A stretch of 64,000 bases of DNA from Lama guanicoe. Its lineage: Eukaryota. Under the pieces are notes generated by a model. The model was not told the origin of the DNA, ran no database searches, and saw nothing but the letters and a program-made list of their open reading frames with translations. The stretch is from NCBI GenBank assembly GCA_013239625.1, contig MU056703.1, positions 981,185-1,045,184 on the forward strand, given 5' to 3'. Below are positions 49,801-52,800 of the stretch, one piece after another (the stretch's first letter is position 1; each line of letters opens with the position of its first letter). The translations under genes were made by a program, and so were the position numbers.

Positions 49801-52800
49801 GACTTGGGGTGAGACGCGGGAACCGGAAACCTGATGCCCGCGCCTGGCTGACCAGCCGCCGCCAGCCCTGCGGCCGCCCTTCCGCTCGCCGCCGCCCTCT
49901 GGTGGCCGACAGAGGCGGCTCCCAGAAAGTCTGGGGCTCCTGCGGCCGAGGGAAATCGGCAAGTTACGGTCCCAGCGCTGCTCACAGGCGCCGCCCCGCG
50001 GAGAAGCCAGGGGGACACCTGCATCCGCGCCACGTGGTGGAACTCCAGGGGCTCAGGGCCGGTCCACCGAGCCTCCAGCCGCCCGGGCAGGAAGGGCGTT
50101 CCTCCCGCGGCCGGGCCGCTCTCTGCTGGACTCCGACTCCGCACACACCGCCCCCCCGGCCAGATGCCCGGCCCCCGACCCGCTTCCGTCCTGGTCCCCA
50201 CAACCGACCACGCGTCCGCCCAGTCGCCCAGTCGTCCGGCAGCTGCCTCATCAGGCTGGGGAGGGCCTCAGGCCCCGCCCGACCAGGTGCTGCAGGAACC
50301 AGGAGCACAAACAGAACATCTACTTATTAGTCAGTGAAGGCAGGATGCCCCCAGAGGGAGGAGCCGAGAAAACTCCTGTCCTGGGAAGTGTGACCTAGAC
50401 TCCAGCCAGTGCGCACGCGCCCTGGGGGACCGGATGGGGCTCCCCGCCAATTCCTCTGAGCGGGTTCAACCTGACCGGCCCTCTCCTAGGGGCAAAGAAA
50501 ACCAACCACCGAAGCGAAGGCAGAAGCGGGTGGGGCAGGTCCTGTTACCTCCACGATCACATTCAGGCCAGTGTCACAGCCCACGCTCAGGTCTGTGCCT
50601 GGGATGTTGTTATCAGTGGTGGCAGGGACAACACAAATGGGGACGCGAAACTCGGGGTGGCTGCCCCGCGTGTCTGCCATCACCAGCGAACCCTGGAAAG
50701 CCTGCAGCGGGGTCAGCGGGGTGGGTGAGGGGTCAGGGGCGCCAGCTCCCTGCAGTCATCAGGGGACAGGGGACCTGCATCCACGGGGGTCTCTGGGGAG
50801 GAAGCTGTGGGGGCACAGGGGGCAGGAAGAGAGACCAGCAGAGGGGGGCAGAGATGCAGGAGAGGAGATCAATCCAGGAGTGGGGGGGCAGGAGGGGAGA
50901 CCCAGGAGTGGGGGGAGGGCATGCAGGCCCCAGGGAGGGCTCCGTGCCCAGAGCACAGGGGGACGCAGTGGGGGGCAGCAGAGCAGGGCAAGAGGTGGCC
51001 TTGGGTTAGTGAGGGAAGACAGCCCGGCCCTTCTAGGCATCTGGGAGGAAGCAAGGGAGCCTCTCCGGCAAGTTCAAGGCCAGGCCCACCTGCTGGCACC
51101 CAGCCAGGAGTGGCGCTGCTGCCAGTGGGGCCCCCCAGGCAGAGCCGGGGGAGCCCTCTCGGCCGTGTGAGGAGCACCCCCGTGGGGGCCTCACAGGGAG
51201 CAGCTTGGGGGCCTGCGTCCCGAGGCTGGGGGCCCAGGTGAAATCAGCAGGCGCTGATGTCAGAGGAGTGGGCTGCTTTTGTCCCCAAGCACAAGGCGGA
51301 GGTCTGGACTCCTGCCTCAGAGCATTAGTCCAAGTAGCTCGTTAGTGGCCCAGTCCACCCACCACGGCCCAAAGCCACAAGTCCAAGCACAGCCCGGGCC
51401 CCTGCCCGGTCTCTGTGCCCCGCGCAGCACAAGCCGGGGGCCCCTTCTGTGGGAACGTCCGCAGGCAGGATGGGACCCAGGCCTCTGGGTCTCTGCCCTC
51501 CACCCCCGCCAATCCCCAGGGTTCCAAACAGGCCGGGTTCGGGGGTGGGGGAGCTGCGCCCGAGGACACGTGGACGGTGGACCCGACGCGGGTTAGTCGG
51601 GGAGTGGCCGGGAGGAAGGTGAGGGCGTCGCACACCTGCCCCACGCCCCCTCCATCGCCCCTCCACCCGCCAGGCCCGGTCCCCACAGGGACCCTCCTCC
51701 GGCCCGGTGCAGCTCAGGATCACTGGAGGGCACGGTTTGAACCGCTCCCCACCACCACCCAGGACGCTCTGGGCCAGGAACCGGGCATCGCGGGCGGGCA
51801 GGGTGTCATCGGCGCCTTTCAATCTGACGGTGGTTCTATGCCCTCAAGTCCTCGCACCCTCTGTTCCCATCACTCCTCCTCCTTCTCCATCTCTCAGAAG
51901 ACGAGAGGACGCTGCAGAGAGGGGAGAGCCCGGCCCAGGACGAGACCTGAAATTCTGGGGACCAAGTCCAGTCCTGGGGGGGCAACACTGCACCACCAAC
52001 ACTAAGAAAAGACACTTGACAGTCACAGGGAAGCCATCCAGGTGCCCACCTCCTTACCAGGTAATTCAGGGCCACCCTCCCCGCCTGGGGCCCGCGCACA
52101 CAGCGGCCGCGGCTCCCAGCACAACAAGCGGGTGGTTCTGAGGGGTAACACGCAGCTGAGGACCCCCAAACCCCTGCTCTGAGGTGTCCCCTTGGCCCTG
52201 GAGACCCACCACCCTGCGATGCAATCAGTGCTCAGGACGCGTCCAGACGCAAAGGAAACAGGCTGACGAGGACGGCGGTTGAACGTCCAGAGGACGTGGC
52301 AGCTGATGACACAGGGCCATCTCGGGCCCCAGCCTTGGCACAGGGACGTTCTGGCCGTGGGCTCCCTGTGGGCCTCCTGACATCATGGGGCGTCACCAGC
52401 ATCCCGGCCCCCGCTCACCAGACGCCGGGGCACCCCTGGCCCAGATGTGACCACCGAGATGTCGCCTGGCGGCAAGATCACTGCCAGGACCACCCCCTTC
52501 TGGGAACAGAAGGAACCAGCTGGGACAGGAGACGCCGGGGACTGACCTCAGCACTCCCAGGGCCAAGAGGTGGCCCTGCCACGAGCCACTGGAGCCTCGT
52601 GTGGCCCTTCAGGCCTTCCCTGGCCACCCCCTTCTCCTGCACGTGGCCAGCCTGGCCCAGTCCCAGCCCAGATCCAGAGCCCCGAAGAGACTGGGCATCA
52701 CTGTGACTATAACACACGGGGCTCGGGGCAAACCGAGCAACCTCAACATGCTGGCCTTCAGGACCTGCTGAGCAGCCCTCCGACCACTCAGTACGAACCA

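Follow-up and report, generated by a model that had tools for sequence, protein, structure and literature searches.

Equal-length, tandem homologous exons that swap a segment of an allosteric or substrate site are known from sugar metabolism, where exons 9/10 of PKM and exons 3A/3C of KHK are the classic regulated mutually exclusive pairs. Glycolysis is controlled mainly at the PFK1 step, and a second PFKP variant differing at the allosteric site would matter. A mutually exclusive exon event has been described for human PFKP between Ensembl PFKP-203 and PFKP-205, with a V539I exchange at a residue adjoining the fructose-1,6-bisphosphate effector site, and the parallel between PFKP and PKM was drawn in the same work (Lam et al., 2021, PLoS Comput Biol, PMC7954323; bioRxiv 10.1101/292813). 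PFKP is also counted among 236 tandem-duplicated exon substitutions of GENCODE v40, and is absent from the table of proteomics-detected events of that survey (Martinez-Gomez et al., 2022, PMC9741552). Elsewhere the human pair was kept as an unvalidated candidate because the two exons were joined in more than 10 reads (Hatje et al., 2017, PMC5740500). The idea has been published without experimental follow-up, and our literature search on Ser530 or on functional work on a PFKP b isoform returned nothing usable.

We analysed a stretch of 64,000 nucleotides from Lama guanicoe (hereafter the window), in which the following features of PFKP bear on a second copy of exon 16.

54975-55061, minus strand: exon 15, ending in GGFE, its frame followed by eye; its donor is common to both alternatives.
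54276-54428, minus strand: exon 16, the constitutive 'a' type, 153 nt, donor GAC/gtgagt.
50702-50745, minus strand: candidate 3' splice region of exon b, read from the sequence, with the AG at 50703-50702 and a C-rich pyrimidine tract.
50733 (the A), minus strand: branch-point candidate CTGAC, 32 nt upstream of exon b.
50549-50701, minus strand: PFKP exon b (16b in the preliminary description), a homologue of exon 16 with 153 nt in phase 0-0, encoding 51 aa.
50543-50548, minus strand: 5' splice site of exon b, GAG/gtaaca, which fits the consensus between -2 and +4 but has C at +5 where the consensus has G.
47888-48052, minus strand: exon 17, beginning with TCDRIKQS; its acceptor is common to both alternatives.

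The preliminary description had reported an open 153-nt segment bounded by ctgcag and gtaaca, equal to exon 16 in length and phase, aligning to it without gaps at 25/51 identical residues and retaining its structural residues, and the sequence is as described in each of these respects. Exon b is flanked by ccgctgcag on its 5' side and gtaaca on its 3' side, has no internal stop, and lies within the 6223-nt intron between exons 16 and 17 (54275 to 48053), separated from exon 16 by an intron of 3574 nt; both exons being 153 nt long with phase 0-0, the reading frame is kept with either one. The two peptides align ungapped with 25/51 identities and 34/51 positives (BLASTP E = 1e-18), and the 11 residues of the segment that are invariant across PFKs (P21, P26, T28, N31, N32, P34, G35, G41, D43, T44 and N47) are all present in the window copy. 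At the DNA level 93/153 nucleotides are identical, with 34, 37 and 22 of 51 at the first, second and third codon positions, and near saturation of third positions combined with a retained protein points to an old duplicate that was under selection for most of its history. Searched by itself, the exon b peptide recovers human PFKP structures (E = 4.5e-14), aligning to PFKP chain positions 510-559, and matches Pfam PF00365 with 40.3 bits over profile positions 110-147 (cut-off 30.9); the exon 16 peptide shares 50/51 residues with human PFKP in PDB 4rh3. Local tblastn with PFK proteins, positions 54346-54401 being masked, found one additional copy of exon 16 in the window, which is exon b, and no second copies of other PFKP exons in the window. 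Segment 50549-50701 is therefore confirmed as a real tandem homologue of PFKP exon 16.

From PDB chain offsets in the structure alignments, exon 16 would correspond to human PFKP residues ~511-561, and residue 539 to exon position 29. At this position the a exon has V, whereas I is found in b exons from other species, so the human event would be the same as the one seen here. The gene, the exon replaced, the intron upstream of the TCDRIKQS exon and the contrast between a-type ATVSNN and b-type ATISNN all agree, the match resting on residue position and the published description. The window copy differs in reading ATTDNNI where ATISNNV is found, in its probably weaker donor and in its mean identity of ~60% to the other mammalian b exons compared. 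The exon had first been described as hidden, yet it is neither hidden nor new: it is among the GENCODE v40 substitutions and in RefSeq/UniProt models of at least 15 mammals; exon b is an ancient alternative exon, annotated in human and many vertebrates, and its sighting was correct but is not a discovery. What we add is modest: a date in the vertebrate ancestor, the finding that the exon is well conserved outside mammals whereas inside them it changes at about four times the rate of exon 16, and the common double inclusion in gene models.

The 51-aa exon b peptide was searched against 1.8 billion representative proteins, where many matches were short ORFs from raw (Logan) assemblies, and full-length protein searches were scored on the sturgeon and horse b exons. 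A protein homology search with an 89-aa open frame of the window gave no match, a result that says little given the length limits of that search. Annotated PFKP proteins with exon b were found in lamprey, many teleosts, sturgeon, paddlefish, bowfin and coelacanth, in frogs, turtles, geckos, snakes and alligator, and in at least 15 mammals (Equus, Ictidomys, Meriones, Alexandromys, Chionomys, Peromyscus, Zalophus, Callorhinus, Mirounga, Halichoerus, Mustela, Neovison, Neofelis and two Panthera species). In all annotated isoforms found, the upstream neighbour of exon b is GGFE or exon a and the downstream neighbour is TCDRIKQS, and where exon a is present exon b sits between it and the TCDRIKQS exon, as in the window. 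These exons share with the window copy the length, the neighbours GGFE and TCDRIKQS and the PFK core motifs; Acipenser ruthenus and Latimeria chalumnae provide b-only examples, and Bufo, Emys, Danio, Petromyzon, Equus, Zalophus and Panthera examples with both a and b. The PFKP model of Coryphaenoides rupestris, labelled 'LOW QUALITY PROTEIN', carries a, b and a partial second b, probably an artefact of assembly or modelling.

In a tree of the 51-aa segments, the window copy fell within a clade of 25 tips (FastTree support 0.85), apart from the PFKP a exon and from the PFKM and PFKL equivalents, and one member of this clade matches the horse b exon. A second, highly conserved clade, separate from that of the window, includes sturgeon PFKP. 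Identity between the window copy and the named mammalian b exons is 29-33/51. The tree itself cannot date the duplication, support at deep nodes being at most 0.5. However, lamprey PFKP carries both a and b, which implies a duplication older than the split between lamprey and jawed vertebrates, and it is on this gene that our dating to the vertebrate ancestor rests.

The raw-assembly ORFs run straight through exon b as LQ/exon/VR. Orthologous ORFs cross the acceptor as LQ/A, consistent with a conserved CAG. Read-through of the donor gave Val-Arg in 11 of 12 other representatives of the b clade and Val-Lys in one, against Val-Thr in the window. Val-Arg at this point implies a G at +5 in the orthologues, and the donor of the window copy is probably weaker than theirs.

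Rates of evolution separate mammals from other vertebrates. Among nine non-mammals (36 pairs), the mean identity is 41.5/51 for exon a and 38.3/51 for exon b, the two being about equally constrained, whereas among eight mammals (28 pairs) it is 47.7/51 for exon a and 36.4/51 for exon b, that is, 3.3 against 14.6 differences per pair and a rate about 4.4 times higher for b. The window copy, with a mean of 30.5/51 to those eight mammals, is the most diverged of the mammalian copies seen. Invariant residues have been lost in several named mammals (N32S in seals, N32G in Peromyscus, N47D in Ictidomys, N47G in Alexandromys, T44S in Chionomys), and at least one is missing in 16/25 sequences of the b clade to which the window copy belongs, against 1/25 in the non-mammalian b clade and 18/104 among the other matches. 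Non-mammalian b exons are thus highly conserved, with a single sequence of the 25 deviating at an invariant column, and mammalian copies, the window copy especially, are not. Nevertheless, the columns that vary more within the b clade tend to be those that also vary more in all other PFK exons (Spearman 0.48, p = 3e-4), and none of the 20/51 positions at which the window copy departs from the b majority falls on the 11 invariant columns (P = 0.0018). A rough conversion of amino-acid divergences, as opposed to a codon-level calculation, would give a dN/dS of perhaps 0.5-0.7 in the window lineage against ~0.1 for exon a. Selection on mammalian exon b appears clearly relaxed, but not absent. The preliminary description had argued for an old duplicate under purifying selection: the age and the constraint hold, as third-position saturation with a retained protein and the tracking of constraint indicate, but in mammals that selection is much weaker than was assumed.

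We consider that the window segment is the orthologue of an ancient vertebrate PFKP exon b, which arose as a tandem duplicate before the lamprey/jawed vertebrate split and became in mammals a minor exon under relaxed selection, and that the window copy, which is intact, can probably still be spliced in at a low level; we give this reading a probability of roughly 0.6. The donor of exon 15 (54975) would join either the acceptor of exon 16 or that of exon b (50701), and the donor of exon b (50549) would then join exon 17 (48052). The b-only product would be a full-length PFKP with residues ~511-561 exchanged, a segment that is the counterpart in the C-terminal half of the catalytic sugar-phosphate loop and lines the activator site for fructose bisphosphates. 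As no sequence feature enforces exclusivity, transcripts with both exons would also arise, carrying an in-frame insertion of 51 aa. Homology, orthology, annotation in other species and evolutionary rates are observed here, and a use of the exon or a functional effect in Lama guanicoe is predicted. That the window copy is still a functional alternative exon at a low level seems to us rather probable, although the donor lacking G at +5, Thr29/Asp30 and the highest divergence in the set count against it, as do the fast rate of mammalian b exons, the invariant residues lost across the b clade and, for human, the absence from the proteomics table and the failed validation as a mutually exclusive pair.

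A rival reading takes exon b for a drifting relic whose function disappeared either in the mammalian stem or within this lineage, any inclusion amounting to splicing noise, mostly together with exon a, and yielding no useful protein. The fast rate of b in mammals and the low identity of the window copy, where non-mammals show near parity, agree with such a relic, as do the invariant residues lost in the named mammals and across the b clade, the loss of G at +5 of the donor, the absence of human PFKP from the table of proteomics-detected events (Martinez-Gomez et al.) and the fact that the mammalian models recovered all carry a and b together. However, mammals have been diverging for ~100 My or more, and still all the copies observed are in frame between Q and V, allowing for some ascertainment bias, as intact frames are partly expected among sequences derived from ORFs. 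Moreover, substitutions avoid the structurally constrained columns, and the amino-acid divergence of the window copy from other mammals, ~41%, is below a neutral expectation of ~55% (a crude estimate and not a computed dN/dS). The search also ranked models with both exons first, and mammalian models with b alone may have been left off the list for that reason. A drifting relic is a serious but on balance unlikely account of the window copy.

Much less likely is a strict mutually exclusive pair like PKM exons 9/10, through which some tissue would make a second PFKP isoform in substantial and regulated amounts. As in PKM and KHK, the PFKP exons are of equal length, in tandem and homologous, here also of equal phase, and would exchange an allosteric-site segment. 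That exon b can replace exon 16, as first proposed, is upheld by b-only isoforms (GGFE/b/TCDRIKQS) annotated in many vertebrates, including fishes, sturgeon and coelacanth, and by a b-only isoform in human (Lam et al., PMC7954323). However, no mechanism enforcing exclusivity was found by length, intron size or splice-site type: 153 is divisible by 3, so double inclusion gives neither frame-shift nor NMD, the 3574 nt between a and b leave no steric block, and both introns are GT-AG. Among the first 120 proteins listed, a and b occurred in tandem in 62 (~835 aa) and b alone in 53, and all 16 mammalian models compared had both, with the reservation that the ranking placed double matches first and may have missed b-only mammalian models. 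These counts contradict, in other species, the strict exclusivity of the preliminary description, under which the 54276 to 50701 junction should be absent; joined exons are also seen in human reads (Hatje et al.), and the fast evolution of exon b in mammals hardly suits a regulated isoform. Strict mutual exclusivity is therefore not supported. In contrast to PKM and KHK, both annotation and human reads document double inclusion of the PFKP pair, for which neither a regulator nor evidence at the protein level is known. The age of the duplication, the fast evolution of exon b within mammals and the common double inclusion in gene models argue for caution before mammalian exon b is treated as a PKM-like switch.

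One structural feature speaks for the mutually exclusive reading. A 22-nt inverted repeat with 21/22 complementary positions has its arms at 48113-48134 and 53165-53186, the former 60-80 nt upstream of exon 17 and the latter 1.1 kb downstream of exon 16, so that it brackets exon b; its score was reached by none of 25 dinucleotide shuffles. Pairing of this putative element could loop the exon out, but it could also be an ordinary dispersed repeat. Another inverted repeat adjoining the exon 16 donor (21/23) was discarded, its score lying within the range of dinucleotide shuffles.

Many mammalian RefSeq/UniProt models have a and b in tandem, giving a PFKP of ~841 aa with a duplicated 51-aa core segment. 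A protein of this kind would be unlikely to fold normally, and these mammalian models may be by-products of annotation or splicing rather than working enzymes.

In the alignment with bacterial PFK the exchanged segment falls on residues 114-147, and in PFKP it lines the bisphosphate activator site (Lam et al., PMC7954323). A b-only protein would plausibly be an allosteric variant. In the window copy, the loop at positions 28-33 (50603-50620, minus strand) reads T-T-D-N-N-I, where other vertebrate b exons have T-I-S-N-N-V. In a comparison with 165 other PFK segments, none had Thr at position 29 and seven had Asp at position 30. The residue of bacterial PFK opposite position 30 (3pfk) is 127, the catalytic Asp. 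Exon b might have been re-tuned in this lineage by the change of Ile-Ser to Thr-Asp at positions 29-30 and of Val to Ile at position 33, restoring an Asp at the place of bacterial Asp127, where mammalian C-terminal halves have Ser, in which case a b-only isoform in some tissue that includes the exon would show an altered response, or none, to fructose-bisphosphate activators; we regard this as a long shot. The hexamer ACTGAT (50609-50614, minus strand), which encodes Thr-Asp, is the exact reverse complement of ATCAGT, which encodes the Ile-Ser of the b consensus. A single micro-inversion of 4-6 bp could have made both changes, only if the ancestor used ATC AGT.

That the segment is a chance ORF with chance AG/GT flanks, for which the only argument is that GC-rich introns often contain short open frames, is refuted by the homology to exon 16 at a BLASTP E of 1e-18, the Pfam PFK match above the curated cut-off and the orthologues at the same place in the gene in dozens of vertebrates.

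Finally, 14 small sequencing runs of a related organism (46-576 million letters) each contained exactly 6 of 11 sampled exon b words. Runs that small would be unlikely to hold one intronic spot by chance if they were whole-genome DNA; they could instead have been made from RNA or by capture, a guess, their type not being recorded as RNA, that we do not take as evidence of expression.
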